Part shown: positions 21,199 through 38,246 of the stretch, piece by piece
How the letters are laid out: each line of letters begins with the position of its first letter
Numbering within the stretch: the stretch's first letter is position 1
Sequence record: PQ464590.1
Reading direction: 5' to 3' (one strand)
DNA: 64,000 nt
Notes under the pieces: model-generated
What the model was told of the DNA's origin: nothing
Seen by the model: the letters and a program-made list of their open reading frames with translations, nothing else
Databases searched by the model: none
Translations under genes and position numbers: made by a program

Positions 21199-21903
21199 CT
21201 ATAGACCTGCTGCGTATCTAAGGATATGTAGTACTGTAAGTTTATCTCCCTGTGCTATTAGGGAATCTATTTTATGTTGTATCTGTATAGCTCTTTGATA
21301 CACGGGTATATAGTACTGTGTATGTGGAACTATAGTATCTAATTGGAATTGTAGTTCCTCTGGTATTTCTTTGTCGGTGATATTATACGTTTGTACTATA
21401 TCATTGAGTTCTTTATCTAGTTCTCCTTCACTGAATTGGGGATGAGATATTAGTCTGAATTTGAATTGCTGGGATTGTTGGGAATGTCTCATCCTTCTTA
21501 CTGATGAAGCTGGGATTGTGATACCTTCGTTATACAGTACTACATAGTCATTGAATGTATCTTCTACTGGATCGTATCCCATATGGATTGCGTGTACTTT
21601 ATTGTTCGAGAATACTATGAGGCACGGGACATTATTGATAGTACAGATAACATCTATTACATATGGAGCTTTTGTTCTTAGGGAGTATTTTGTTTTTCCT
21701 TGTTCTGCATATGATGTTGCTAGAAGGATTTGGACGCCGAGATATTTGGCGTACTGTTTAGTTCTTTTATCTGCGTTATAGATAATATTAGTATCTACTG
21801 ACTTTACGTTCTTTACGTACATAGGAGCTTTACCTGGAGTTGTATGTCTCCGGTTCGCATTGAAAGTACGTTGGTAATGTTTTTGTAGGTTAGATAGTTT
21901 CAT
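21199..21903 (-). CDS. hypothetical protein
   Basis: 234-aa AT-rich ORF; probable paralog of 21904..22557. Confidence 0.75.
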   Translation of the reverse strand: MKLSNLQKHYQRTFNANRRHTTPGKAPMYVKNVKSVDTNIIYNADKRTKQYAKYLGVQILLATSYAEQGKTKYSLRTKAPYVIDVICTINNVPCLIVFSNNKVHAIHMGYDPVEDTFNDYVVLYNEGITIPASSVRRMRHSQQSQQFKFRLISHPQFSEGELDKELNDIVQTYNITDKEIPEELQFQLDTIVPHTQYYIPVYQRAIQIQHKIDSLIAQGDKLTVLHILRYAAGL

Positions 21904-22557
21904 TTATTGTTCCGTGTTAGTATAGTTCAGTACTGTGCAGATGTTTAGGAGTTCTAGTACTGTGATATCTTTGTGAATGTTCCTGGCGATATGTAGGCGT
22001 AATTCGTTCGCTGAGATAAAGATGTGAGGATCGGGAAGAACGAATTCGAGTTGTGCGATTTCTTCTTCTGAGTACGGTTTATCGTCTTGAATATGTTCTT
22101 GTAGTACTGGTATTAGTTGTGTTGATTGTTCGGAGTTCCTGATGAATTTGCCGTGGCTTTGGTCATGCATAATATTAGTACTGTACGGATGTAGTTCTAT
22201 ATCGTCATCCCCGAACATATATGGGAAGTATTGTTCTTTGGTACAATGTGTGACGATGCCATACAGATCTGACTCATCGAACATAAGTACTGTTGGGGTG
22301 TTATGGATATAGATTTCCATATCGAAAGTTTCGGGCATAGTACTGGAAGTATTGAGGGCATGTTCTGATTGTTTTACGTCCACGCGGAAGATGTTTGCGT
22401 GTTTAGTTTTCTGGTACTGTTGTAGTACTTTAGTGAGTTTATCGTTCCCGAATTTCTTATGCGGCATGTAGTGGAAGTTCGAGGATGTGGTATTGAATTC
22501 TTTGCGTAATTTTTTGAAGTGCAGGTGGTAGTGCAGTGAGTGTTTAGAGAGTTTCAT
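21904..22557 (-). CDS. hypothetical protein
   Basis: 217 aa; promoter TAGACA-17-TATAAT at ~22588-22616 with a 14-bp palindrome TCACAGTACTGTGA in the spacer. Confidence 0.75.
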   Translation of the reverse strand: MKLSKHSLHYHLHFKKLRKEFNTTSSNFHYMPHKKFGNDKLTKVLQQYQKTKHANIFRVDVKQSEHALNTSSTMPETFDMEIYIHNTPTVLMFDESDLYGIVTHCTKEQYFPYMFGDDDIELHPYSTNIMHDQSHGKFIRNSEQSTQLIPVLQEHIQDDKPYSEEEIAQLEFVLPDPHIFISANELRLHIARNIHKDITVLELLNICTVLNYTNTEQ

Positions 22558-22629
22558 ATAGGATTCCTTTGGGGTTAATTTTGCATGATTATATCACAGT
22601 ACTGTGATGATGTCTAGTGGTGTTTTGGG

Positions 22630-22635
22630 TAAATA
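22630..22635 (+). promoter_or_regulatory. T4-type late-promoter-like TAAATA (also 27080-27085 and 31818-31823)
   Basis: TAAATAC(G/T)(T/G)TATATT recurs ~30 nt before the first gene of each plus-strand unit; no -35 box. Confidence 0.65.
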
Positions 22636-22667
22636 CGTTATATTCATTTTTATATGGAGATTTTTAG

Positions 22668-23531
22668 ATGATACCTTTTGCAAGAATGTTACAGTACGGA
22701 AATGTAGTTTCTGTGATTAATAACATGGGTACACGTACCTTGATAACTCCTTCACCGTCGCCTACTGCGAGATTTTCTTTTGGGTATACAACATTAGGGG
22801 ATTCTGCGTATTTGTATGGTGGTGCGGTAGTTGGTTCAGATTATAACAATGAATTTTGGAGATTTGACAGTACTACAGAGACTTGGACACAATTACAGAG
22901 TGGTTTGCTTTCTATGCATGGTTCAGGGTTAGCTGCTTACAATGGTAAGGTATATATGTTCGGTGGGAACACTGGGACAACGGTTAATAGGTTTTTCATT
23001 TATGATATTGCGAGTAATACATGGACTGAGAACACGACGAGTATAAATCCCCCGACTGCAAGGCATCATTGTCGATTTGTCAGTACAGGTAATGGGAAGT
23101 TATATTTGTGGGGAAGTTTGAATGGTTCTGAGTTATATTCGTATGACATTGCGAGTAATACGTGGGTGAAATTAGCTTCCAGTACTATTCAGAATTCATT
23201 AGCTGGGGATATGGCGACTGATGGAACTAATTTGTACTGTTCTGGGACATCTAATCAGAAATACAATATAAGTACTGGCACCTGGAGTACAATGGGTGCA
23301 TTAGAGGGTAGAATGACTTACAGTACAATAGAATCGCGTTTGTACTGTGTGAACAGTGAGCGTTTATATCAATATAGTACTGGATTAAATTCATGGGTAC
23401 AGGTTGGTGATAACAGTGCTATTGGTATTTCACGTGGGGCATTATATTCATTTGTTAGTTCATCTAAAGTACTGAGTGCATTTGGTTCAGTAGGCAGTAC
23501 TGCTAACAGTAGTCAATATAAATTTATATAA
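22668..23531 (+). CDS. Kelch-repeat beta-propeller with MIPF tag
   Basis: Repeats of YLYGG/YMFGG...YD..S.TW. Confidence 0.85.
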   Translation: MIPFARMLQYGNVVSVINNMGTRTLITPSPSPTARFSFGYTTLGDSAYLYGGAVVGSDYNNEFWRFDSTTETWTQLQSGLLSMHGSGLAAYNGKVYMFGGNTGTTVNRFFIYDIASNTWTENTTSINPPTARHHCRFVSTGNGKLYLWGSLNGSELYSYDIASNTWVKLASSTIQNSLAGDMATDGTNLYCSGTSNQKYNISTGTWSTMGALEGRMTYSTIESRLYCVNSERLYQYSTGLNSWVQVGDNSAIGISRGALYSFVSSSKVLSAFGSVGSTANSSQYKFI

Positions 23532-23541
23532 GGAAACGGAG

Positions 23542-24750
23542 ATGATACCTTTTGCAAGAATGATACAGTACGGGAATGTTGTACAAGAAAATAAGATAGT
23601 TAAGATTGATAATAATGTTGCTGCTGGGGTGTTGTTATTATCTAGTACTGGTGATTTATATGGTTTCGGTCCTAATGGTGCATATCAATTAGGGTTAGGA
23701 CATAACAATGCGGTGACTACACCGACATTATTATTCAGTGGTGTTAAGAATTTTTGGAGTGCTGGAGGTGATTCGGTACTACAGACTACGGATGATAAAT
23801 TTTATGCTGCTGGGGTTGGTAATATAATTGACGCGGCGAACACTTCCAGGCAGGTATGGACTGATATAACTTCTGTCTTTTCTGCTGTTGACATATCAGA
23901 TATTAAGAAAGTAGATATAAAGGCGAACTGTTTAGCAGTACTGACAAATTCGGGGAATTTATATTGTGCAGGATACAATGGTTATATGGCATATAATGGT
24001 ACTGCTACAGTTCGGTACGCGAACTTAACATTAGTTCGTTCTGATGTAATTGATATTAAGGGCAATTACAATTTAGGTTTATTTACATTAAGGACTAATG
24101 GTAAAATATATGGTGGGGGATATAATACATCTGCCCAGATGGGTTCAAACGGTGGTGATTCACAGAATCCTAATACAGTAGTATATTATTCTGGGATTAC
24201 AGGGTCAAGTGATTGGTCTTATGCAAATTTAGATTGTTTATACACATGTAGGACTGGTACATTTTTGAACAACGCAAAATTAGTAACTGGTTCTGATACC
24301 TCTCTAAAAATGCGTGTAAGTGGTACTGGTACTGATGGTTCCTTATCTGGGGTAACTGGTAAATGGTCGGGATTCCAGACTGCATGGGGTTCTGAAAACA
24401 TACTACAAGCTGAAAACATTTTAAAGGGATTTGATAGTAGTGCTAATACTACATCTCCATTTTTACTTACTAGTGATGGTATATGGACATGTGGTAATAA
24501 TGCATATGGTCAGCAGGGAACAGGTGACGTATCGAACAAATTAATTTATACTAGAAATAGTAAAATAGATAGTATTGTTAAAGATTATAGTAAATTAACT
24601 ATTTTTAATGCAGCATTTTATACTTCGTACTTCGTATATGATAATAAATTATACGGGACTGGTGCGTTAGGTTTTGCCAATGCTGGATCGTTAATACCTG
24701 GTCACAGTACTGGGTCTAGTGTATATGTAGAAATACCACTACCATTTTAA
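23542..24750 (+). CDS. RCC1/BLIP-II-like beta-propeller with MIPF tag
   Basis: G.LY..G.N..GQLG.G repeats. Confidence 0.8.
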   Translation: MIPFARMIQYGNVVQENKIVKIDNNVAAGVLLLSSTGDLYGFGPNGAYQLGLGHNNAVTTPTLLFSGVKNFWSAGGDSVLQTTDDKFYAAGVGNIIDAANTSRQVWTDITSVFSAVDISDIKKVDIKANCLAVLTNSGNLYCAGYNGYMAYNGTATVRYANLTLVRSDVIDIKGNYNLGLFTLRTNGKIYGGGYNTSAQMGSNGGDSQNPNTVVYYSGITGSSDWSYANLDCLYTCRTGTFLNNAKLVTGSDTSLKMRVSGTGTDGSLSGVTGKWSGFQTAWGSENILQAENILKGFDSSANTTSPFLLTSDGIWTCGNNAYGQQGTGDVSNKLIYTRNSKIDSIVKDYSKLTIFNAAFYTSYFVYDNKLYGTGALGFANAGSLIPGHSTGSSVYVEIPLPF

Positions 24751-24762
24751 GGAGAGAGAGAA

Positions 24763-25890
24763 ATGATACCGTTTGCAAGGATGATACAATACGGGAATGT
24801 TGTTACCCCAATAGAAGAATATGACAGAAGTATGCAATCTCAATATAATGCGGTATATTATTTGCATCGTAATGGGGATTTATATTCGTACGGGAATAAT
24901 AACTTAGGTCAATTGGGCGTTGGTGATGCTGCGAACCGAACTGTATGGACAAAAGTACTGCAAGATGTTAAAAAGTACTGGTTAGGTGTTCATGGATGTT
25001 TAGCAGTAAAGACCGATGGTTCATTGTGGTACACTGGTAGTGCTACTGCGTTTCCACAGTTAGGTTCAACAACATATGTGTTTATTAATGTGGACTCATA
25101 TTTTTCTGGTGTTGGAATTGATAGTGCCATGATTCGAGATGTTATGATAACAGATAGTATTAAGGTTATAACAACTGATGGAAGATTTTTATATTGTGGT
25201 TCAAACGGGTCTAGACAACTAGGTACTGGTTTAACAGCTAACGTTCCAACATTAACATTTGATCCTAATTTTACAAATATAGTATCTATGGGTGGAGCAT
25301 TTGATAACACAGTACTGATATTATCTAATGGTGAAGCATGGCAAGCGGGTGCTTATCGTAATAATACAGGCGGGAGCACGAACCGAAATCCATTTGCTAA
25401 AGTTCTTGATGGTGTAAAATATTGCGGTTCTGCATTTCAAAGTACATATTATTTCATGTTAGATGGGACAATCAAAGTTACTGGATATAATAGTTATGGT
25501 CAATTGAGTACTGGTAATACTACAAATACACCAGAGGGTTCAATGGTACAAATATCACATACGTACGATCCAAATTCGGATATTAAAATTTATACATCTT
25601 TATCTAACAATGCTGGAACATCACCAGTACTGTATCATAATGGATTATTATGGAGATGTGGGAGTAACTCAACAGGACAGGTAGGTATTGGTTCAGTTGT
25701 ATCACCACAAACACTGTTAGTTAATCCTTTAATGACAAACGTTCCTAGTGTTAAATATTTCAGTGCTGATAATATAAGATTCTTTGTTATTGATAATGAA
25801 TATAAATTATATACATGTGGGTCGGTGTCATTAAATGGTGTTCCTAATTTGGATACATTAACATACGCTGGCGTACAGCCGTGGAATTAA
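24763..25890 (+). CDS. RCC1/BLIP-II-like beta-propeller with MIPF tag
   Basis: GDLYSYGNNNLGQLGVG and related repeats. Confidence 0.8.
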   Translation: MIPFARMIQYGNVVTPIEEYDRSMQSQYNAVYYLHRNGDLYSYGNNNLGQLGVGDAANRTVWTKVLQDVKKYWLGVHGCLAVKTDGSLWYTGSATAFPQLGSTTYVFINVDSYFSGVGIDSAMIRDVMITDSIKVITTDGRFLYCGSNGSRQLGTGLTANVPTLTFDPNFTNIVSMGGAFDNTVLILSNGEAWQAGAYRNNTGGSTNRNPFAKVLDGVKYCGSAFQSTYYFMLDGTIKVTGYNSYGQLSTGNTTNTPEGSMVQISHTYDPNSDIKIYTSLSNNAGTSPVLYHNGLLWRCGSNSTGQVGIGSVVSPQTLLVNPLMTNVPSVKYFSADNIRFFVIDNEYKLYTCGSVSLNGVPNLDTLTYAGVQPWN

Positions 25891-25900
25891 GGAGAGAGAT

Positions 25901-27040
25901 ATGTTACCATTCGCAAGAATGATACAGTACGGAAATGTTGTACAGGTAAAGGATATAGTTGATATACAAGTATCCAGAACTCACGCATTAGTACTGGATA
26001 GTGATGGAAACTTATGGGGTCGTGGAACTAACACGAACAACATATTAAACCACACTGGAATGAGTAATACTAGTACTTTTGTATTAGTTGATACTGGAGT
26101 GACTGCAATGTTTTGTGGTTATATCCTTACCCTGTATGTAAAGAACGGGGTATTATATAGAATTGGTTCATCAATGACATGGGACACCGGAGCGGTTCTA
26201 GTACCGACTGCGGTTTCTATTCCATTTTCTGCTGCATCCATTAAGAAGATTCAATGCGTTACCAGTACTAGTATAATGATACTATTGAATGATGGTACTA
26301 TGTGGTACAAAGGTGCAGGTACTAACGGTAGATTTGGTAATGGCAGTACTGCATCTGTTAGTACATGGACATTAAGTACTGTTACTGATATAAAAGACAT
26401 ATATCATTGTGTATGCTTTTTAGAAGGTAGTACAGCGTTTAGTATCTTATTGAAGAATGATGGTACTGTATGGGGAGCAGGTAGTGTAGCACTGAATACT
26501 ACGTCTAATACATTTAGATTCAATTCATACTTAAGCACTGCAACGTGGTTCCAGCGTACAATACAGAGTGATATAGTTCAGATTGCGGCTGGATCAGGTA
26601 GTAGTGTTTTATTCCTGGACAGTACTGGTGTATTGCGTGGAGATGGAAATACCAATGGTGAATTAAGTGGGAATACCACGTCTGGTACGTACAATAATAC
26701 ATTAATGGCTAACGGTGTGAAGTTATTTGGTCTGAACTGGGAAAGTTCATATTATGTACAGACTGCTACGCCTACGGTATTAAATGCTGGTGGACGAAAT
26801 TATAATTTATCGTCCTCATTCACTTCACCTGGTTCGTATGTAGGTAGAGTCAGTACTGATTTATCAGAGGAGATTAAGGCAATATATACAACCAGGGGTG
26901 TTGATATTGGTTTTGGTATTACTTATATTTCATTACAGGGTAATAACGTAGTAATGGGTGGTAACAGTACTGCTTATCAGTTAGGTGTGAATACTGGGAA
27001 TATCAATTTAGTTCAAAGTAACTTACCTGGTGTAAGTTAA
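25901..27040 (+). CDS. RCC1/BLIP-II-like beta-propeller with MLPF tag
   Basis: HALVLDSDGNLWGRGTN repeats. Confidence 0.8.
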   Translation: MLPFARMIQYGNVVQVKDIVDIQVSRTHALVLDSDGNLWGRGTNTNNILNHTGMSNTSTFVLVDTGVTAMFCGYILTLYVKNGVLYRIGSSMTWDTGAVLVPTAVSIPFSAASIKKIQCVTSTSIMILLNDGTMWYKGAGTNGRFGNGSTASVSTWTLSTVTDIKDIYHCVCFLEGSTAFSILLKNDGTVWGAGSVALNTTSNTFRFNSYLSTATWFQRTIQSDIVQIAAGSGSSVLFLDSTGVLRGDGNTNGELSGNTTSGTYNNTLMANGVKLFGLNWESSYYVQTATPTVLNAGGRNYNLSSSFTSPGSYVGRVSTDLSEEIKAIYTTRGVDIGFGITYISLQGNNVVMGGNSTAYQLGVNTGNINLVQSNLPGVS

Positions 27041-27044
27041 CAGG

Positions 27045-27077
27045 ATGCCTGGTACTTTTGGGTACTGGGCATTTTTA
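27045..27077 (+). terminator. intrinsic terminator
   Basis: ATGCCTGGTAC/GTACTGGGCAT 11-bp stem plus TTTTT; near copy at 31782-31814. Confidence 0.75.
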
Positions 27078-27110
27078 ATTAAATACTGTATATTAAATGA
27101 GGGGATTTAT

Positions 27111-28304
27111 ATGATACCTTTTTCAAGGATGATAAAATACGGGAATGTTGTTGACCCTATTAGTACTGATAATATTAAACGGGTGGATGCGAATTCATCA
27201 GGAGGTATGGGAATATTGTACAACAATGGTGATTTGTGGGTTCGTGGAACTAATAACTTTGGATGTTTAGGCACTGGTAATAATTCTCCAGTTACTTCAT
27301 GGACGTTAGTTCGTTCAGGCGTAGATGACTTTTGTTTAGGTGTTACTGGAATGTTGGTAAAGAGTTCCGATGGTAAATTATTATATAATGGGCGTGACTC
27401 AATTTTGAATAATAATACAACATTTTTACAATTTGCTGATTACACCGCACAATTTACGCCATCTGGTTTTTCGGTTCATAATATTAAGCAGATGCAGGTA
27501 GGACAATATAGTGTATTAATACTAATGAATAATGGGGTATTATTGGCATTTGGAAGAAATAACTCAGGAGAATTCGGTGACGGGTCATCTAGTAGTACTT
27601 CAGGGTTGGCAATCCGACAGGTAGCGGCTAATGTTGATAAAATCCAATTATACAATTTAAATTCTGGATATTTAAGTGATGGAAAATTCTATCGTGCTGG
27701 ATATAATGCTAACTATGCGTTAGGTAATGGAACTACTAGTGATATACGGACTTTTCAGGTATATAATCCACCAAGTGGTGAAAGTGCAATTATAGATTTC
27801 AACATAACAAATTACGGTACACGATTATTAACCTTATCAAGTACTTCAGGATATAACATGTATCAGTGTGGTATTAACACGAGTTATCATTTAGGGGTAA
27901 ACAGTACTACTGCTACTTTTGTTATTCCAACATTTAGTACTATGCAATCTATATTGCCATCATCAAATATAGAGTCGCACGCACTTAATATAAAGGGTCA
28001 AGTTAGTTTAGGGGATTTAATATTGCCTAAACAGAATCCTAATTCTTATTTCTGGGTTAGTGGTGATAATAGAAATGGTGCATTTGGTACGGGTGATACG
28101 GCTAACATTTCTGCGTTGTCAATGATTGGTGGTAAAGGTTTACCTAATAATATTGATTATAGTTCTGAATATGTACATGTAGTTTCTTGTTCATTTAATT
28201 CTAATTTTATACTCATGAACAATACCATTTATGGGTGCGGGGTGAACTCTGGATTCGGTTTAAATAGTACAACGTTTGTTAGTTTAGGAACATATCCAAC
28301 TTAG
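27111..28304 (+). CDS. RCC1/BLIP-II-like beta-propeller with MIPF tag
   Basis: Start reassigned to MIPFSRM after GAGGGG RBS; RCC1-like repeats. Confidence 0.8.
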   Translation: MIPFSRMIKYGNVVDPISTDNIKRVDANSSGGMGILYNNGDLWVRGTNNFGCLGTGNNSPVTSWTLVRSGVDDFCLGVTGMLVKSSDGKLLYNGRDSILNNNTTFLQFADYTAQFTPSGFSVHNIKQMQVGQYSVLILMNNGVLLAFGRNNSGEFGDGSSSSTSGLAIRQVAANVDKIQLYNLNSGYLSDGKFYRAGYNANYALGNGTTSDIRTFQVYNPPSGESAIIDFNITNYGTRLLTLSSTSGYNMYQCGINTSYHLGVNSTTATFVIPTFSTMQSILPSSNIESHALNIKGQVSLGDLILPKQNPNSYFWVSGDNRNGAFGTGDTANISALSMIGGKGLPNNIDYSSEYVHVVSCSFNSNFILMNNTIYGCGVNSGFGLNSTTFVSLGTYPT

Positions 28305-28316
28305 GAGAATAAAAAA

Positions 28317-29468
28317 ATGATACCTTTTGCGAGGATGATAAAGTACGGGCAAGTTATCCAACCATTGCCTGGAGTAAAGAAGATATTAGCTGCGTCTTCA
28401 TGGTGTATGGTGCTATATGAGAATGGTGATTTATATGCACGTGGGCGGAATGCTGGAAGTACATTTGGTGATGGTTCAGCATCTAACACAGACGTTATTG
28501 GTGATTGGAAATTAATACAGTCCAGTGTCAAGGATGTATGGAGTTCATTAGGAACAACGTTCTGTATTACAATGGACAATAGAGTGTTAAGTTCAGGAGC
28601 AATACGTGGATTAACTGGTGGAACTGCTAATAGTACTCAAATATTCACTGACAGAACTAGTATTTTTACGGATGCTGGTTTAGCAGTACAAGATATAGTT
28701 GATATGTCAGTTGGCCCGTACGATGTATATGCATTGACAGTTTCAGGTACAGTATATAGTGGTGGCACTAACTTTTCAGGCCAGCACGGTACTGGAAATA
28801 CCACAGCTAGGGCATTTGCATTGAATACGAATTTTGTGAATGTTAAGAAGATCAGTTCATATGGTGCACAGGGCGGAACCTTCTGGTACTTAGACACATC
28901 TAACACATTATATGGCACCGGAAATGGTTCTGTTGGTCAGTTATTATCGGTATCCGGCACTGTCAGTACTAAGAGAGTTTTGAGTACTGATGTAATTGAT
29001 TACAGTGCGAATATTAACTGTTTCTTTATTATAAAGAGTGATGGTTTATATTGTGCTGGTTCTCAATTCAACGGACAATTAGGTGATGGAGTTAACAGTT
29101 CTAACATAGGTAATGTCGGTAGGACTACATTATTTAAGCATGAACAATTTACATCAGCCCCGTCATATGTTTATAACGATACATATATGACTGTTGTTCG
29201 TTATAATGATACTTGGTACGTATGTGGTAACGTAGCTAAGAGTGGTTATGGTCAAAATAATAGCTCCGCGTCTTTTGTAGTTAACAGTACTACAGTACCG
29301 AAAGTGTCTGATCCTAAATGGGCAATTGGCAATAATAACTCTTATGTAATATCGGAGTTCGGGGTATTACATGGTACTGGTACATATTCAGCAGCTACTG
29401 ATTTGTTACCTGGCTATACTGTTGCCCAATATACGTTTGTACCATTAAGCACGGCAGGGATACAATAA
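28317..29468 (+). CDS. RCC1/BLIP-II-like beta-propeller with MIPF tag
   Basis: GDLYARGRN and GQLGDG repeats. Confidence 0.8.
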   Translation: MIPFARMIKYGQVIQPLPGVKKILAASSWCMVLYENGDLYARGRNAGSTFGDGSASNTDVIGDWKLIQSSVKDVWSSLGTTFCITMDNRVLSSGAIRGLTGGTANSTQIFTDRTSIFTDAGLAVQDIVDMSVGPYDVYALTVSGTVYSGGTNFSGQHGTGNTTARAFALNTNFVNVKKISSYGAQGGTFWYLDTSNTLYGTGNGSVGQLLSVSGTVSTKRVLSTDVIDYSANINCFFIIKSDGLYCAGSQFNGQLGDGVNSSNIGNVGRTTLFKHEQFTSAPSYVYNDTYMTVVRYNDTWYVCGNVAKSGYGQNNSSASFVVNSTTVPKVSDPKWAIGNNNSYVISEFGVLHGTGTYSAATDLLPGYTVAQYTFVPLSTAGIQ

Positions 29469-29483
29469 GGAGATTAAAAAAAA

Positions 29484-30620
29484 ATGATACCGTTTTCTAG
29501 ATTAATAAAGTATGGTAACATACGAGAGGTTAAAATACAAAAAATTGATACGACGAACACAAGTACGGTCGTACTATTTGATAATGGTGAACTTTATGGC
29601 TTCGGTCAAAATTCCTTTGGTGTTCTTGGGTTGGGACATACTGATATAGTATTTGATATGACACTATTGAATACGGGCGTTAGTGACGTATGGTGTGCAC
29701 AGTCTGATATATTAATTAGAAAAGGTGACAACTTTTATTATGCAGGTGCTGGTCAAATTATTGGTAGTACTAGTGTATCAAGTAGCGTTTTTGTTGATTG
29801 TACATCGATGTTTGGAACTCTCAATAAGGGAAATATCAAAAAAATACAGTTAAGTTTAGGTACATTAGTACTAATGAATGATAATAAGCTTTATGCTTGT
29901 GGTTTCAATAATGGTTTTTATGGTAATGGCTCATTCAACCGAGTTTCAGCACTAACACAGGTTCAAACTGATGTTCTTGACGTGAAGACTAACAGAAATG
30001 GTACAGCCTGGATAAAGAAAACTGATAATAGACTTTATGCTTGTGGTCAGAACAGTTCATATCAAACAGGTGCAGGTACTAGTTCAACGGTAGCTTCCTA
30101 TACTTTAATATCTAAATTTACTACAGTTGATTTAGATAATTTATCAGTAGCTGATAGTACTGCATTTTATTACACTGGGGCTGCTTTATATGGTTCAGGA
30201 ACCAAAATGGGAAATGGAAATAACACCAGTACTTCACAGAACTTTAATGGTTCCGTTGTTTTTAATTTAGCTAACTATGTTAGGATGTATAGTACGAATT
30301 GGGGAACGACCGCTCCATTTATTATGGGTTCTAGTACTGGTAATGGTATTCCTGATTCATTAAATTTCTGTGGTTCAAATACATACGGTGCATATGGTAC
30401 GGGTACTACTGGGACAGTAACTGCATTTACACCTATGAGTACCTTGAATTCGGTACTGTCTGATTTTACAAAGATTACGCATATTCAATCCAACGCATAT
30501 GGTACATATGTGGTGGCTGATAATAAATTGTACTGTGCAGGGAATGCTGCTGGTGGTGCGGTTCCAGGAGTTAACACTGGTAATCAATTATCATTTATAG
30601 AAGTTGAGTTACCCATATAA
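29484..30620 (+). CDS. RCC1/BLIP-II-like beta-propeller with MIPF tag
   Basis: GELYGFGQNSFGVLGLG; closest in pattern to 23542..24750. Confidence 0.8.
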   Translation: MIPFSRLIKYGNIREVKIQKIDTTNTSTVVLFDNGELYGFGQNSFGVLGLGHTDIVFDMTLLNTGVSDVWCAQSDILIRKGDNFYYAGAGQIIGSTSVSSSVFVDCTSMFGTLNKGNIKKIQLSLGTLVLMNDNKLYACGFNNGFYGNGSFNRVSALTQVQTDVLDVKTNRNGTAWIKKTDNRLYACGQNSSYQTGAGTSSTVASYTLISKFTTVDLDNLSVADSTAFYYTGAALYGSGTKMGNGNNTSTSQNFNGSVVFNLANYVRMYSTNWGTTAPFIMGSSTGNGIPDSLNFCGSNTYGAYGTGTTGTVTAFTPMSTLNSVLSDFTKITHIQSNAYGTYVVADNKLYCAGNAAGGAVPGVNTGNQLSFIEVELPI

Positions 30621-30629
30621 GGAGGGATT

Positions 30630-31775
30630 ATGATACCATTCGCAAGAATGATACAGTACGGGAATAATATTCCCAGGGCTGCAAGAATACAAACAGTAAA
30701 AACATTACAGTACAACGTGTTTATTTTATTGGATGATGGTAGGTTATATGGTCGTGGACGAAATCAAAACTATCAATTAGGTACTGGTGTAAACACACCA
30801 ACTATAGTTGAAGAATGGACTTTATGTTTAGAGAACGTAAAGGAATTTTGGTGCACTGGCTCAGTTAGTGGTATATTGGCTGTAAAGTACGATGGCACTT
30901 GGTGGAGTACTGGACAGCAAACCTACAGAGGTATTACAACTATACACCAAACCTGGACCGATGTTACGTCTATTTTTAGTACTGTAACTAATACATATCA
31001 GAAAATAGTAATTGGTAGTGGTGTTACACTATTACTAACTAACACTGGTGAATTGTACAAAATGGGATATAATGTAAATGGTGAAGTTTTCACTGGAAAT
31101 GCAACTACACGGGTTACAACATTAACATTAACCCCTGAAGTTAATGTTGTTGATATTGGTGCATCAATGGATACATCATCATTTGTATTATACGCAGATG
31201 GTACATTGAAGGGTTCTGGTAATAATGGCTCTTGGACTAGTGGCTCTACACTAGTAACCACATTAACTACAATAACGACTGGTGTATTAAAGATTAACTC
31301 TGAGAATTCTTATAATGCTGTGTACGTACAAAAGAGTGATGGTATATATGTTGCAGGTTCACAATTCATGGGCCAATTGGGTGATGGTGTAAATGGTTCT
31401 GCCAGTACTTCACGCTCTATATACAAGATTCCAGTAGCTACGAATCCAGGGGAAGTAGATTACATTGGTTCTTCTAACTACGTAGTACATATGCGTAGTA
31501 CTAGTGGTGTGTGGTATTTTGCTGGTCGTGATGGTAGACAGGCTGGTAATGGAATAACATCTAGTTCAGCAATAACAACATATACTGCGTTGCCAAACAT
31601 CGGAATGAACAGTACTGAAATGTCACACACGTATTTGATTACATTCGTTGTAATTGATGGCGTTTTATATGGCTCAGGAAATGGAAGCACGACTTCTGGA
31701 TTAGGAGTTATACCATATGTAGAAGCTGGTGCTGGTAGTACTGGTTTATTCAAGATGATAAACACGCCTAGTTAA
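30630..31775 (+). CDS. RCC1/BLIP-II-like beta-propeller with MIPF tag
   Basis: GRLYGRGRNQNYQLGTG repeats. Confidence 0.8.
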   Translation: MIPFARMIQYGNNIPRAARIQTVKTLQYNVFILLDDGRLYGRGRNQNYQLGTGVNTPTIVEEWTLCLENVKEFWCTGSVSGILAVKYDGTWWSTGQQTYRGITTIHQTWTDVTSIFSTVTNTYQKIVIGSGVTLLLTNTGELYKMGYNVNGEVFTGNATTRVTTLTLTPEVNVVDIGASMDTSSFVLYADGTLKGSGNNGSWTSGSTLVTTLTTITTGVLKINSENSYNAVYVQKSDGIYVAGSQFMGQLGDGVNGSASTSRSIYKIPVATNPGEVDYIGSSNYVVHMRSTSGVWYFAGRDGRQAGNGITSSSAITTYTALPNIGMNSTEMSHTYLITFVVIDGVLYGSGNGSTTSGLGVIPYVEAGAGSTGLFKMINTPS

Positions 31776-31848
31776 GTATATATGCCTAGTACTTCAACAG
31801 TACTGGGCATTTTTAATTAAATACGTTATATTATAAATGGAGGTACAG

Positions 31849-33003
31849 ATGATACCATTTACAAGAATGATAAAATACGGAAGAAATATAGTTACAAATG
31901 ATATTAAGAAGATGGTAGCCAGTACGAACAGTATTGCCCTTCTATATAATAATGGTAATTTATATATGAGGGGTGAGAACTCATTGTCATTATGGGGGAC
32001 TACTGATGCAAATAATAAGTTAGATTGGACATTAGTTCTTACTGATGTACAAGATGTATGGATTGGAGCATATCATACAATAGCACTAATGAATGATGGT
32101 ACGTATTATTGTTGTGGTTATGCTAGGTCGTTAGGTGTAGCTGGAAGTAATAGATTGTGGGAACCATATGCGTTGCTTAATAATCTTATTAGTTCAACTG
32201 GTGATACTGTGAAGAAAATAGAGTGCGGTGTACAGGGTTCTCAAATTCTAATGAGTAATGGGGATTTATATTTTACTGGATTTAATAATGCTTCATGTAT
32301 GGCTCCCTCTTCATTTGGGACCACAGTAACTTCGTTTATTAAATCACTTACGGGTGTAAAAGATGTTAGTTATAATATGAACGCAACGATGGTAATAACA
32401 AATGATAATTTACTTAGAGTTGTGGGTACATCAGATAACCAAAAACTAGCAACACCCTCTAATGGAACAGTATTGTCTGTATGGACAACTAAAAGCTTAC
32501 CTACTGGTTACACATATCCGGTTAGCCTATATGAAGCTTATAGGTCCACATATATATATTGTGCATCGGATAGTTCAGTGACCGACACGGCATTAGTTGG
32601 TGCAGGTTACAACGGATATAATCAGTTAGGGCAACCAGGAACCTTCAACACACCACTAGCAACTTACACTGCTGGTGCAACTAATATTAAAATTACATCA
32701 TTTGGTACTGGCTGGTGGCCTACTGCGTATAGTACTATGTGTACTGATGGTTTACAACTATATTCTGCTGGTCAATTGGGTGCAGCTATGGGCAGTGCGA
32801 CGAACAAGACCACTGGGTTTACAGCGATCCCATTTGAAGCAGGTGCAAGTGCTAGTACAGTTGATGAGTTTTGTATGGCTGGTTCAGCAACAACAACTGG
32901 AGTTACTATGATGAGGTCTGGTAATACTGTATTCGCATGTGGTGTAGCAGCTTGGTTGGGGACTGATCATTTTAATTTAGTTCCAGTATCATTACCAGAA
33001 TAA
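31849..33003 (+). CDS. RCC1/BLIP-II-like beta-propeller with MIPF tag
   Basis: Start reassigned to MIPFTRM after GGAGG RBS. Confidence 0.8.
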   Translation: MIPFTRMIKYGRNIVTNDIKKMVASTNSIALLYNNGNLYMRGENSLSLWGTTDANNKLDWTLVLTDVQDVWIGAYHTIALMNDGTYYCCGYARSLGVAGSNRLWEPYALLNNLISSTGDTVKKIECGVQGSQILMSNGDLYFTGFNNASCMAPSSFGTTVTSFIKSLTGVKDVSYNMNATMVITNDNLLRVVGTSDNQKLATPSNGTVLSVWTTKSLPTGYTYPVSLYEAYRSTYIYCASDSSVTDTALVGAGYNGYNQLGQPGTFNTPLATYTAGATNIKITSFGTGWWPTAYSTMCTDGLQLYSAGQLGAAMGSATNKTTGFTAIPFEAGASASTVDEFCMAGSATTTGVTMMRSGNTVFACGVAAWLGTDHFNLVPVSLPE

Positions 33004-33016
33004 CAAGGAGAATTAA

Positions 33017-33688
33017 ATGATACCTTTTACAAGAATGATTAATTTTGGTAATGTAGTTCGTAACACCAATATTATTGATTTGGATTTTAGAAATGCAATG
33101 TTAGGAACATCAGATGTTCTGGATGTTTCCGATCATCATTATCCATTTACTAAAATTAATAGTACTGGTACTAACGTCATTCAATTTGATAGTACTTTAA
33201 ATACGAATGTTATGTATTTTAATGGAGCACTATATAGTACTCCTATGGTTTCGGACTTATATTTGAGTTCAAAGAACTTCGAAATAGAATTCGTTTACAA
33301 AAGTTTAGCTGGTGGTGTTTCAGTACTATTCGGTACTGGATATTATCCTGATACTGCGAATAGAATATCTGGAATATGCTACCAGATGCATCAGAATACT
33401 GATGCACCACAAACATTTGTTACCGGAACAATTGAAACAAGCTACTGGCGAAATCAAATGTCCGGTGTAGGTGATAATACATGGTACAGAGTTGTTATAA
33501 CACGAACAGGCACTACTGTTTCAGTTTCATGTTACAACATGGCTGGTGCGTTAATTGCTTCACGTTCAGACGGTTCTGGGCAAACATTTGGCAATGGTAC
33601 GTCTTTTGGCATTGGTGGTTACTATAAAACACTAACATCGAACCTGTTTTATGGTTACGTACAGTACTTAAAAATTAAAGAATTATAA
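33017..33688 (+). CDS. ConA/LamG-like lectin-fold protein with MIPF tag
   Basis: YFNG...FEIEF..., WYRVVITRTGT.VS.Y, IGG...F.GYVQYLKI pattern. Confidence 0.7.
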   Translation: MIPFTRMINFGNVVRNTNIIDLDFRNAMLGTSDVLDVSDHHYPFTKINSTGTNVIQFDSTLNTNVMYFNGALYSTPMVSDLYLSSKNFEIEFVYKSLAGGVSVLFGTGYYPDTANRISGICYQMHQNTDAPQTFVTGTIETSYWRNQMSGVGDNTWYRVVITRTGTTVSVSCYNMAGALIASRSDGSGQTFGNGTSFGIGGYYKTLTSNLFYGYVQYLKIKEL

Positions 33689-33690
33689 TT

Positions 33691-33720
33691 AAAAAAAGCC
33701 CCTCAATTGAGGGGCTTTTT
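33691..33720. terminator. bidirectional intrinsic terminator
   Basis: AAAAAAAGCCCCTC-AATT-GAGGGGCTTTTT between convergent gene blocks. Confidence 0.9.
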
Positions 33721-33722
33721 GT

Positions 33723-36700
33723 TTACCATTCCATATCCAGAAGTTTATGAATAGCATAAACTACTATACTGAATATTACAGTACCTATTAGGACAAGTGT
33801 AATCATCCACAAAGTACTCATGATTGGGACGCTATTCATGAAGTAACCAACACCTCCCATTATTGCCATACAAATTTCCACAAAGATGAGGAATGAACAA
33901 TAAGGAGTATCCATTGCTTCACGAACGCCAGAGAATATATCTGTTTCAAAGACATAATCTAACCCAATTACCACCGCTGAACTAATAAAGAACACGTGGT
34001 AATATACTACGAAAAATGTAAGTATTTCCATTGCCATATTATTTTACCGGTTTTGAGGTATTGCGTTATTGAGGACAACGAATGCATTGAATGCTTCGTT
34101 GAGTTCTACTGAATCATAGCGGTCCTGTTTACGAGCACGATGTACTTCATGTTTGCTGTACGTCGTATTCTTATCCATGAACTCTTCGAACTTATCACGG
34201 ATCAGGTTGTTGACACGGTCTGCATACTGTTTAGGAGTGCATTTTGAATCGAAGTTTATGTACTCTTTCGTGACGGTTTCAGTGAATTGTTGCACAGCAA
34301 GGATACGATCCAGTAAGCGACCTTTCGCGTACAGGGCATCGATTTCTTCTTGTGCTTCTTCCTGTGTGCCGAAAGAAAGACGGTGCTGCCATTCACCATT
34401 CTTCTCATTATGATCATAGAACTTATCCCCACCCATAGTACTGAACAGGGTTTTGGATGGATCTTTAGCGTCGATAATAAAGAAACGAGTTACTGAATGG
34501 GTGTTGTTAATGTTCATAGTAGTTCCTCTTGGTATAGATAAAAAGTTTGCTATCTAAAGAAGTATTTAATCAGATGCGACTAAATCCAGTACAGTTATAT
34601 TAGCAGTACTGGATTCAGAAGTCAAGCTTTTTTAGTAACGATTTCTGCGGCGACGTAAAACAACTTCTTCACGGAGGTCAGAGAGCCAGCACCAGCCATA
34701 TATAGCGATGAAGACTACACCAATAAGACTGAAGCAGACAGTACTAATGATGTGTGGATATAGTCTGTATTCCCACCCGAAGATTGCACAACAAATGTAC
34801 CACGCTCCGAATACTACACCTAAAGAAATGAGGATTACCTGAACCTCTTCAACCAAGTCCTCGAACCAATTCCAGATACGAGTATCGAAGAACCAGGACA
34901 CTAACAGGATTCCGTACATTGTCATGATTGCATAAAGTACACAATCAAATACTGCCATGTGATTCAGAACAAATTGCTCCATCAGTATTACCTCAAGTTA
35001 TTAGCACGTTTCAGATCATGACGTTTCATTTTGACCCAGAAGTGAATCTTATCCCACAATGCTTTAGCACCAAGTACTGTGTACATCAGAACAATGAATA
35101 CAGTACTAAACATGATAGATAGTCCTGCGATTGCTAGGATTGGTCTAGACTCCATGAAGTACCCTAACCACAAGAACACACTGAACAGTGAAATGCAGAT
35201 CCAGTACTTGTACAAGTAACGATGTTCATGTTCAGTTACTGTATCATTCAGGCGGTACAGAGTTGGAATACAGAACAGTACTCCAAGTTTCAGTACTACG
35301 AACAGTGTACACATGATACTTGATACAATGATGATGGTCATCATCAGTGGTGTAATAATCATTCTTTTCTCCCGTGCTTACGTTCGTGAATTTTGTGATG
35401 CAGATTCACAAAGAATTTTATAATCGGATTACCTTCACTGAACACTAGTAACCAGATGATTATCGTATTGAACAGCATGATAATCGCACCGAATATGGTG
35501 AATAGGAATGTACCGAAATCAGCTTCAATGAACCACATCGTCCACCATAATAATGTAAGAATGATGTTCGATGCGAACAAGCCGTGGATCGAATCACCTT
35601 CGCTGTCAATATCTTTGTAAGCTTTTTCTGCAATAGTTACACAGAAGAACTTTCCAACGTACAGAAGGATGAACAAAGTACTGTACACTGTCATTGGATA
35701 GATTACACATTTCAATGCTAAGTGCATTGTTTCGAAGTTGATCATTCTTTAGTCCTCTTCTCAATAATCTTTTGGTGCAGCCGCTGCATGAACGGGACAA
35801 TCCCTAAACAAATTAGAATGATTGAACCAGCAGTGAATGCGAACCATGCAAAGAATGCAATCAGAAGCCCAAGCATAACAAGACCTTCAACTTCTGTCAA
35901 CAATCCTAGCCACATCACTACAGTACTAACAATGCCGATAACACCTACAATGATAGGGATGTTGTCTTTCTTCATCTTATCGTACCAATTCCTGAACGGT
36001 GATACGTAGAAGAACTTACCTACAAGTACCCCAAAGAACAGTACTGAGTATACTGTTACAATTGATACCATCTTTACACCTGCTGGTGAGAGTATATCCA
36101 TTAGTAATCCTTTAGTCTACGTAAACGTTTATGGAAATCACGTAGTGCGAACACACTAAACGAAATGAGCCACGCGATTAGACAGCCTCCAGCAATCGCT
36201 GCTGCGGCGATTCCGATCCCGATATCAATATCAGGGAAGTACGCATAAACGAAGCCTAGAGCCGCTGCAATCGTTGCCAGTACAGTAGTGATGATGGCGA
36301 ACGGTAGCCCGTCGAAGTCCCATGACTCGTACTGGATTTGGTTATCGAACCATTTAGAACCAGGGAGGCAGAAGAACCACATCACCCAGCACAGGAGCCA
36401 CAATGTCAGTACTGCAAATGAGAAGATAGCCATTATTTTATCTTATTCCCCACAATGTTTTCACGGAACGCCATTAGTTTCTTATGAACCGTTGGAATCA
36501 CGGCCACAACAAAGAACCCGAAGAAGAATAGACCATTGATGTAAATTCCAATCTTAGGTCCAAGAGCCAGATCTATAAGATATACCAAACTCGTGAACAA
36601 TGCAAGTGTTGGTACGCAGCGTACAAAATCTGCATTAGGGAATAACCACAAGAAGCTATCCCGTTTGAAGAACCACAGTACTAAACCGAGTAGTGACCAC

Positions 36701-38246
36701 GTTCCGAACGTAATAGCAATCACTGCATTTATTGTATCAAAAGTAGCTGGAGTCATTTTTCTTAGTCCTTGAATCTGGAAGTTTCTCACGTAGCTCCATT
36801 AGATAGTGCATTACTGTAATTAGAATACCAACACTATACAGGCAGCCACACAAATACAATGCACGGTCAACCATTTCCCCATGCATGAGGTAGCTAGTCA
36901 TAGTACTGAATGCTGACACAAAGAACAAAATACAAGTTGCTGTAATTGAAGCTTCTTCCTGAAGGAATGGCGAGTCCTTCTTGAAATACCATAGTACTGC
37001 ACGTAAGAACAGAAGGAATCCTAGTGCAATTATGGCGATGTTGTTCAGAGTAATAAGGGTTTGCATATCTTAGTCCTGTTTAGGGAATTTCTCACGAAGT
37101 TCTACGAGGTACTTACCACCTAGTACCATGACGAATCCAAATACAAGTACTATCAGTACTGACACATTAGCAAAGAATGCGAACGGATAGTACTCCATGT
37201 TAGGATCTGCGTACTGACCTAACGCGAACAACAATGAACCTCCAAGCAATAAGATATAAATGATCTCACATGGAAAGTTCGGGAACATCTTATAGCGTTC
37301 ACCGCGACGGAAGTACCACAGAATTATATACAACGCACCGTAGAATGTCAATACAATTGTGTAGATATTTGATACAGTCATCAGCGTTGCAGTTCCAAAA
37401 TACTCGATGATGCTACCAGCTAACTCGTTCATACTATTCCTTACTGTTCAGTACTTTAACGTACCAGGTCAAAAGGTTCAGATATGATTCTTGTACTTCA
37501 GAGCGGTCTTTAATAGACCGCATAGCACGCATATCTTCAATAATCCATTGTTCAGGTTTCATGATATTCCTTAGCGTTCTGGCAGTCTGTCACGGATACT
37601 GGACAGTACTACAAAGATAAAGATGCATAGAATCACTGCACCAGCAACACTTCCGTAGATGAAGTTCACCCAGAATGCAAATGGCGGTGCATGACCATCT
37701 GATAAGAAATTAGCTAAGTACTGGAACAAGCTAATCACTGCACAGATACCGAATGATACCCAGAACGTTGCCTGTACTCCTTCAGTTGGTGGAAAGATTT
37801 TGTGCCGTACACTCAACTTGAAGAACCACAGTACTGAATAGAATACTAGGAACATGAGGTACGAAAGGAAGTACACGTTGTTGATAGTTTTTAGTAAATC
37901 AGCATCTTGGAACATGTTATTCCTCCCAACGATTAGGAATTTTATTACGTAAACTGGTAATCAGTTCTGGTAAGAACCATAGTAACATCAACCCGAACAA
38001 AATACAAGACCCAATGAACGTGAACGGTGGTGATTCTTTCCCGTCATAGTATATGATACCCATTTCTATACCCATTGCACTTGATGCAATCATAAAGTAC
38101 GCCATACAAAAGATCTGGGCTGGTTCACAGTCATTGATTAGCATCTTTTTGTAGTACGGGACTTTGAAGAACCACATAATCCAGTACATAAGGATGTACA
38201 TAACCACTGTACCGTAAATCAGAACTCCTACACTGTTAAGGCTCAT
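33723..38246 (-). other. tandem array of ~11 paralogous 105-130 aa three-TM membrane proteins
   Basis: ORFs 33723, 34632, 34988, 35359, 35742, 36101, 36433(-36756), 36737, 37070, 37571, 37917; shared W/K-(F/Y)-F-K-like motif after TM1 and a basic tail. Confidence 0.75.

Follow-up and report, generated by a model that had tools for sequence, protein, structure and literature searches.

Ten consecutive genes of the jumbo myophage Hallingskeid encode proteins of three unrelated folds that all begin with the same short peptide, and this shared N-terminus (hereafter the tag, defined as the first 12 residues) is probably a docking peptide that is at least partly retained in the virion and connects interchangeable adhesin heads to one shared site. 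The sequence analyzed (the window, 64,000 nucleotides) corresponds to bases 1-64000 of the 366,158-bp genome of Erwinia phage Hallingskeid (PQ464590.1), which infects Erwinia aphidicola; over bases 22000-34000, the sequence matches this record at identical coordinates with 100% identity. The tagged genes occupy positions 22668-33688 on the + strand, and their open reading frames (ORFs) are intact and coincide with CDS0073-0082 of the GenBank record, where one product is labeled "hypothetical protein", eight "regulator of chromosome condensation", and one "virion structural protein". An original prediction based on the letters of the window had described a common N-terminal tag on one Kelch-like, eight RCC1-like, and one LamG-like ORF, and this description was confirmed by the coordinates (table 1), by Pfam, and by AlphaFold2 (AF2) models compared with known structures in Foldseek.

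Five positions of the tag (M1, P3, F4, R6, and G11) are invariant in all ten proteins. A single protein deviates at each of positions 2 (I in nine, L in one), 7 (M in nine, L in one), 8 (I in nine, L in one), and 10 (Y in nine, F in one), and positions 5 (six A, two S, two T), 9 (five Q, four K, one N), and 12 (eight N, one Q, one R) are more variable. The original prediction had proposed a search for the tag elsewhere in the genome. With a position-specific scoring matrix built from the ten copies and applied in six frames, together with a loose regular expression, exactly ten sites were found in 366 kb, all of them in the array; these sites score 42-53 bits, whereas the rest of the genome does not exceed 12 bits. 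The mean pairwise identity among the ten proteins is 0.80 within the tag and 0.23 in the bodies, which, across three unrelated folds, bears out the claim that conservation of the tag does not depend on the cargo. The nucleotide identity is 0.81 over the 36 bases of the tag and falls to the background level (0.31-0.41) immediately on either side. Each of the invariant residues P3, F4, R6, and G11 is encoded by two or three synonymous codons, and pairwise comparisons of the tag codons contain 136 synonymous versus 110 non-synonymous differences. Since the wobble positions are free while the residues are fixed, selection acts on the peptide, and the use of synonymous codons at invariant residues argues against recent gene conversion or a DNA or RNA element as the main cause of the conservation.

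The cargo assignments differ in the level at which they hold. The products of tagged genes 2-9 are RCC1-like (Pfam E values of 1e-14 to 1e-26), with RCC1 repeat models above their cut-offs in most of them, and the AF2 model of the gene 3 product (predicted local distance difference test, pLDDT, of 88.7) aligns with UVR8 and RCC1 at template modeling (TM) scores of 0.75-0.78. The model of the gene 10 product (pLDDT 84) resembles lectin-type jelly rolls (TM 0.5-0.66), with Foldseek matches to lectin-like subdomains, SO2946, neurexin LNS domains, and legume lectins at ~13% identity. Pfam returned only a weak SO2946-like match for this protein (E = 0.0012), and its membership in the ConA/LamG group therefore applies at the fold level only. 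In the model of gene 3, residues 1-16 have a pLDDT <50, the tag has no secondary structure, and the first confident strand starts at residue 24; in the model of gene 10, residues 1-13 have a pLDDT <50, a short low-confidence helix spans residues 4-9, and the first confident strand starts at residue 18. As modeled on two folds, the tag is a low-confidence appendage outside blade 1, and the concern raised with the original prediction, that it might simply belong to the first blade, is countered by these pLDDT values. The tag is also absent from distant cellular RCC1 homologues.

The tagged proteins have near-neutral, charge-poor sequences (isoelectric points of 5.4-8.3) in which serine, threonine, asparagine, and glycine make up 38-43% of the residues, a composition that appears fiber- or adhesin-like. 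PHROGs returned generic labels only and placed the RCC1-like proteins in the category "DNA, RNA and nucleotide metabolism". The labels "regulator of chromosome condensation" and "DNA condensation protein" derive from the name of the RCC1 domain alone, and nothing supports a role in DNA or chromatin for these neutral, charge-poor proteins, which are present in the virions of phage phAPEC6. When the jelly-roll and RCC1-like proteins were compared by sequence with solved structures, no phage virion structure with a homologue was identified; the only matches were a weak, non-significant one to SPP1 gp19.1 and those to eukaryotic RCC1 and UVR8. A word-indexed homologue search with the jelly roll found four close relatives only.

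The presence of tagged proteins in virions, as the original prediction had supposed, is supported by published mass spectrometry (MS) of two relatives. The proteins of purified CBB particles identified by electrospray ionization tandem MS include CBB_144, 247, 536, 537, 548, 549, 551, 552, and 553 (CBB paper); CBB carries 11 tagged genes, and the products of nine of these are among its published virion proteins. CBB_553, a virion protein by MS, is 39% identical to the product of tagged gene 10 (CDS0082), and CBB_550 is 65% identical to that of tagged gene 1 (CDS0073). The structural proteome of phAPEC6 contains gp003, 005, 006, 007, 009, 010, 549, and 551 under the name "DNA condensation protein" (phAPEC6 paper), and all eight begin with the tag. 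The authors of the CBB paper noted six structural proteins that the close relative GAP32 does not have; the hairs seen on CBB were not reported for GAP32, and the authors regarded proteins without a GAP32 counterpart as the place where the hair genes should be sought. The tag is present on each of the six CBB structural proteins that GAP32 lacks.

The CBB peptide report (supplement 6) also bears on the fate of the tag. In CBB_536 and CBB_553, fully tryptic peptides start with tag residue 7 and cover residues 7-13, a peptide of CBB_548 begins at residue 10 and covers tag residues 10-12, and a peptide of CBB_144 begins directly after K13, the full-tag peptide of this protein being absent from the report. 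The tryptic peptides from residue 7 onward indicate that mature CBB particles still contain the second half of the tag. The processing signal that had been offered as an alternative explanation is weakened by this finding, and the proposed retention of the tag stands for residues 7-13 and is left without a peptide for residues 1-6.

A total of 94 tagged ORFs were identified in 14 Rak2-like genomes (IMG/VR matches together with phAPEC6, Kaldavass, and one metagenomic contig), which extends the proposed search to related phages, and the tag is N-terminal in every case. They comprise 52 RCC1-like proteins, 18 jelly rolls, 10 Kelch proteins, and 14 small unclassified proteins. When the first 30 residues alone were compared as a profile with 1.84 billion representative proteins, 21 significant matches were obtained, every one at an N-terminus, with RCC1-like, Kelch, or jelly-roll cargo or in a protein fragment. 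A degenerate DNA pattern matched 50 sites in IMG/VR: three were chance matches in tiny ORFs, and 47 lie at ORF starts with good ribosome-binding sites on contigs of 348-378 kb (CBB, GAP32, 121Q, Serratia BF, Yersinia fHe-Yen9-04, and uncultivated relatives). RaK2 and phiK64-1 were absent from the matches listed in the cargo searches. In Kaldavass, the 674-residue product of CDS0058 (positions 9789-11813 of L016) carries a single tag ahead of tandem RCC1-like and Kelch propellers.

The content of the array varies between relatives. A contig related to Hallingskeid has the same flanking genes and again ten tagged genes at the locus, with four RCC1, one Kelch, and five jelly-roll or other cargoes in interleaved order, and such differing cargo sets at the same locus fit the modular toolkit that the original prediction had envisaged. 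Two tagged genes of CBB, CBB_144 (positions 2501-3265 of L042) and CBB_247 (positions 5001-5735 of L043), lie alone and far from the main cluster of this phage, one of them between nrdD and nrdG and one beside the gene for endonuclease VII. Given the differing cargo at the locus and the lone insertions in CBB, a tagged gene behaves as a portable cassette.

The tag differs between genomes at several positions. In the Hallingskeid group, position 2 is occupied by I, and in the other genomes by L. At position 5, Hallingskeid has A, S, or T, phAPEC6 has A or G, and P prevails in the CBB/Kaldavass group. Most genomes have R at position 6, but Kaldavass has Q or I, and position 9 is K, N, Q, E, or another residue in the relatives. 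Overall, the tag variants follow the genome and not the cargo: the identity of tags is 0.75 across cargo classes within a genome versus 0.62 for the same cargo class across genomes, and none of 2000 permutations of the genome labels reached this difference. Cargoes that are non-homologous cannot be recent duplicates of one another. Judged from these sequences, tags that follow the genome would be the pattern expected from a shared, genome-encoded binding partner.

Some tagged RCC1-like paralogues in 121Q (L034) and phAPEC6 (L003) are much shorter than the others (ORFs of 68 aa and 269 aa), and several tagged ORFs of phAPEC6 are unannotated. The arrays of these two phages seem to include decaying or missed copies.

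A second tag was found in the Vequintavirinae (genomes of ~140 kb), where RCC1-like and jelly-roll proteins homologous to those of the Rak2-like phages begin with an 8-residue motif, M-x-E-M-L-x-L-G, with small variations. The motif is based on six proteins from three genomes (three RCC1-like proteins in W70, two jelly rolls in 4MG, and one in CR3), and a scan of viral contigs with the corresponding DNA pattern gave three chance matches only. That a lineage-specific connector of another sequence precedes the same two folds provides independent support for a design of connector plus cargo, in which the two parts evolve separably.

In the favored reading, the first 12 residues would act as a virion-incorporation (docking) peptide. 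Each protein would consist of the tag, a short linker that often contains a proline and extends to about residue 16-24, and a globular ligand-binding head with one of the three folds (RCC1-like or Kelch propeller, ConA/LamG-like jelly roll). The tagged genes would be transcribed late, alongside the structural genes, and the heads would enter the particle with at least tag residues 7-13 staying on. Since every head carries the same peptide, all heads would bind the same kind of phage-encoded acceptor site, and with a shared acceptor site they could be gained, lost, duplicated, or swapped without altering the chemistry of attachment. Most likely, the heads would be located outside the particle, on the tail, the fibers, the baseplate, or the capsid surface, where they would serve as accessory adhesins for surface glycans or proteins. 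What we infer is that the tag docks physically to a particular acceptor, that the heads lie outside the particle, and that they act as adhesins; an outer position is favored by the ligand-binding folds, the neutral composition rich in serine, threonine, asparagine, and glycine, the occurrence of RCC1 propellers in a fiber module, and the precedent of docking peptides. Candidate structures have been described: unassigned hairs and fibers are visible on the tail and capsid of phAPEC6 and CBB particles (phage papers), and Hallingskeid has short tail fibers with rounded, foot-like terminal appendages (Hallingskeid paper).

Several observations weigh against this reading. The virion proteins were identified in CBB and phAPEC6 and not in Hallingskeid, and the MS coverage of the tagged phAPEC6 proteins is low (3-17%), which makes them minor components of the virion. 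The CBB peptide report contains no peptide that covers residues 1-6 or starts at residue 1, and a minor trimming of the N-terminus within these residues may have taken place. A search for the acceptor with Pfam on nine large tail, fiber, and baseplate proteins revealed no T4 gp10-like or other informative domain, and the cryo-electron microscopy maps of phAPEC6 left fibers and decorations without a gene assignment (phAPEC6 paper). Finally, intragenomic recombination between tags could be an alternative cause of genome-specific tag variants.

A more specific form of the docking model, which is possible but tentative, is that a single type of acceptor is present in many copies per virion and is filled randomly from the 10-15 tagged heads of a phage. 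Pairs of tag and acceptor would then co-evolve as private connectors of a lineage, with one version in the Rak2-like phages and another in the Vequintavirinae, and the hairs or knob-like appendages, so far unexplained, would consist of tagged heads or bear them. If so, the virions of one clone would show different sets of adhesins, a form of bet-hedging for the first contact with variable cell surfaces.

The same virion data could be read in terms of capsid targeting, with the tag directing diverse cargo into the core of the prohead as in the T4 internal proteins. The proteins would then be inside the head, where they might form part of the inner body of 121Q and phAPEC6, and their ejection into the host would be conceivable. 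The jumbo phages considered here are distant relatives of T4-type phages (Hallingskeid paper), the internal proteins of T4 are highly diverse and share only a conserved N-terminal targeting sequence, and the layout of the loci is strikingly parallel. In addition, MS of whole particles is blind to the difference between inside and outside, and phAPEC6 has an inner body that, as its authors speculated, might be built from the RCC1-like proteins. This speculation is, however, based solely on the name "chromosome condensation", and the near-neutral, charge-poor lectin and propeller folds are unlike internal proteins embedded in DNA. The capsid targeting signal of T4 is cleaved off by the prohead protease, whereas residues 7-13 of the tag are kept in mature CBB particles, and the tag has no conserved acidic residue (the ten genes have Q, K, or N at position 9, which is variable in relatives). 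The same cargo is found in the ~140 kb Vequintavirinae, for which, to our knowledge, no inner body has been reported, and RCC1 propellers belong to a protein of the tail-fiber module in a phage of Clostridioides difficile. Capsid targeting is therefore considered rather unlikely.

An assembly role that ends before the particle is complete appears less probable still. Here a chaperone or processing factor of the phage would recognize the tag inside the infected cell, and the tag itself would not hold the protein in the particle, an alternative that was already named in the original prediction. The Hallingskeid genome does encode GroES-like and Hsp70-like proteins and parts of a Clp-type protease, and a disordered N-terminal peptide with hydrophobic and aromatic residues is plausible as a handle for a chaperone. 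Such a helper signal leaves unexplained why three types of self-folding domains need a handle that other virion proteins do without and why the tag is on all six of the CBB structural proteins missing from GAP32, and direct evidence for any such factor is lacking.

The proposal that the 36 shared bases are the conserved element, either as a recombination patch for the shuffling of cassettes or as an enhancer of translation starts with the peptide as a by-product, would agree with the nucleotide identity of the tag, with the varying order and content of cargo at the same locus in related phages, and with the single tagged genes inserted at scattered sites in CBB. It is nonetheless very improbable in view of the third codon positions, which vary while the amino acids are fixed, the drop of identity to background on both flanks, and the persistence of the peptide across genera in which the DNA has diverged; the tag DNA might still have a secondary role in recombination. 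That the peptide is the first or the closing ("velcro") strand of a propeller is hardly credible: many propellers are closed by N-terminal strands, and seven of the eight RCC1-like proteins have hydrophobic residues (V or I) at positions 13-14, where the Kelch and jelly-roll proteins are hydrophobic as well, but one peptide is shared by Kelch, RCC1, and jelly-roll proteins and in one case precedes two propellers, the models of two folds show it at low confidence and without a strand, and the cellular RCC1 homologues do without it.

Three other identities of the tag were considered and set aside. It is too short for a signal peptide or lipobox and has no hydrophobic core. An N-degron read by a phage ClpS-like protein has no evidence of trimming in its favor. 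Head-to-tail chains formed by strand donation, as in chaperone-usher pili, were set aside because three folds cannot share one acceptor groove.

The array looks like three late transcription units (table 1), as judged from its promoter and terminator motifs. A late-promoter-like motif, NTAAATAC..TATATT, is located 31-38 nucleotides (nt) upstream of genes 1, 5, and 9 (at 22630, 27080, and 31818), and the units are separated by hairpins with a GTAC palindrome followed by T-runs, a type of hairpin that is also included in the terminator list of CBB (CBB paper, supplement). The late motif NTAAATA, present ahead of all three units of the array, occurs within 70 nt upstream of 22 of 28 structural genes of Hallingskeid versus 1.2% of random 70-nt windows. 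In CBB, too, structural genes were found to be preceded by this T4-late-like motif, and the tagged genes CBB_537, 551, 552, and 553 are among those in table S7 of the CBB authors. The array shows no enrichment of sigma-70-type promoters (57 found versus 56.7 expected). For genes 5 and 9, the program-made list of ORFs begins at upstream ATG codons (27045 and 31837), and the ATG codons at the start of the tag (27111 and 31849) are the annotated starts and are preceded by ribosome-binding sites.

Table 1. Tagged genes of the Hallingskeid array and their transcription signals (positions in the window; aa, amino acids).
Feature	Position	Strand	Content	Evidence
Tagged gene 1, CDS0073, 287 aa	22668..23531	+	Tag (22668-22703), then Kelch beta-propeller	Pfam, E 6.5e-30
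Tagged gene 2, CDS0074, 402 aa	23542..24750	+	Tag, RCC1-like propeller	Pfam
Tagged gene 3, CDS0075, 375 aa	24763..25890	+	Tag, short linker, RCC1-like seven-blade propeller	AF2, Foldseek
Tagged gene 4, CDS0076, 379 aa	25901..27040	+	Tag, RCC1-like propeller	Pfam
Tagged gene 5, CDS0077, 397 aa	27111..28304	+	Tag, RCC1-like propeller; would open the second transcription unit	
Tagged gene 6, CDS0078, 383 aa	28317..29468	+	Tag, RCC1-like propeller	Pfam
Tagged gene 7, CDS0079, 378 aa	29484..30620	+	Tag, RCC1-like propeller	Pfam
Tagged gene 8, CDS0080, 381 aa	30630..31775	+	Tag, RCC1-like propeller	Pfam
Tagged gene 9, CDS0081, 384 aa	31849..33003	+	Tag, RCC1-like propeller; would open the third transcription unit	
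Tagged gene 10, CDS0082, 223 aa, "virion structural protein"	33017..33688	+	Tag, ConA/LamG-like jelly roll	
Late-promoter-like motif NTAAATAC..TATATT	22630..22644	+	38 nt upstream of gene 1	
Late-promoter-like motif	27080..27094	+	Upstream of gene 5, after GTAC-palindrome hairpin and T-run (27040-27075)	
Terminator-like hairpin (31782-31810; 12 pairs, GTAC palindrome, T-run), then late-promoter-like motif (31818-31832)	31782..31832	+	Upstream of gene 9	
Palindromic terminator-like hairpin, flanked by A-run and T-run	33693..33720	.	Ends the array, converging on - strand genes	

Both sides of the array are occupied by families of paralogues on the - strand. About a dozen tandem paralogous genes for multi-pass membrane proteins of roughly 100-130 aa adjoin the array at 33723-38246, and a run of small membrane proteins also follows the tagged genes in CBB (CBB_539-546), in Kaldavass (CDS0069-0076), and on contig L014 (16346-19960). 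Divergent from the array, two paralogues of 217-234 aa (21199-22557) both begin with MKLS and have similar N-terminal regions; Pfam and PHROG searches gave no match for either. The matching position of contig L014 (4158-6150) contains three genes of similar size, two of them with the same start. Elsewhere in the Hallingskeid genome, CDS0191 (73923-75062, 379 aa, "virion structural protein") and CDS0575 (317082-317744, "structural protein with Ig domain") share an N-terminal motif that differs from the tag, both have the GTAAATAC promoter subtype, and they may represent a second, smaller tag family.

The tag offers a common denominator: the Rak2-like jumbo phages carry large arrays mislabeled as chromosome or DNA condensation proteins, and their particles bear unexplained hairs and decorations. 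One 12-residue sequence unites three unrelated folds, ~94 genes in 14 genomes, and the six CBB structural proteins that GAP32 lacks; it corrects a misleading annotation and makes the nature of these proteins, and the way in which they enter the particle, answerable by structure determination and proteomics. No mention of the shared N-terminus was found in full-text searches or in the papers on CBB, phAPEC6, Hallingskeid, the RaK2 fibers, and the comparative genomics of jumbo phages.

Several known systems resemble the tagged arrays in part. The T4 internal proteins (IP loci of T-even phages) are also a diverse gene cluster with a shared N-terminal sequence, in a T4-related lineage and with products in the particle. 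They are, however, small and counter host defenses, whereas the tagged cargoes are near-neutral binding domains of 25-43 kDa, tag residues 7-13 are kept, and the protease-site residue is not conserved. The branched tail fibers of RaK2, phiK64-1, and CBA120, which belong to related jumbo phages, likewise assemble many host-binding proteins on one particle through conserved N-termini, but these are folded domains of ~100 residues (D1, XD/gp10-like) on trimeric depolymerases, in contrast to a 12-residue peptide on monomer-like heads. The same RCC1 propeller family occurs in a tail-fiber context in the Clostridioides phage protein LIBA2945_00038 (positions 6652-11535 of L044), which is encoded between tail-fiber genes upstream of the endolysin gene; in that case the propellers are fused in a single 1627-aa protein and there is no separate tag. 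A conceptual likeness exists with the umbrella toxin particles of Streptomyces, in which several diversified lectins are displayed on one scaffold, an arrangement read as bet-hedging by its authors; these particles are non-phage, use other docking modules, and have no sequence relation to the tagged proteins.

A close parallel is found among the receptor-binding proteins (RBPs) of K1-5/SP6/KP34-type phages, which dock via N-terminal peptides of 7 to 11 residues or slightly more. The tailspikes of K1E, K1-5, and SP6 on the gp37 adapter and the RBP2 of KP32/KP34-type Klebsiella phages on a T4 gp10-like branching domain share with the tagged proteins a very short N-terminal peptide, a group-specific sequence common to proteins with unrelated remainders, and, if the docking model holds, exchangeable host-binding modules on one acceptor. 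The systems differ in that the RBP peptides carry trimeric beta-helix depolymerases or tailspikes, of which a phage usually has one or two, compared with 8-15 globular propellers and jelly rolls per phage here, and in that Pfam did not recognize a gp10-like acceptor among the nine proteins scanned. Moreover, the Hallingskeid tag is unlike the one group-specific peptide quoted in the RBP paper, and the tagged genes, for which we infer docking, are far from the tail module. The principle that variable cargo can share a short peptide for docking or targeting is known; what is new is its apparent use by giant myophages for whole libraries of propeller and lectin heads, each lineage having a connector of its own. 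The idea of very short docking peptides, developed for small podophages with one or two tailspikes, would thereby also apply to giant myophages and their large sets of lectin-like heads.

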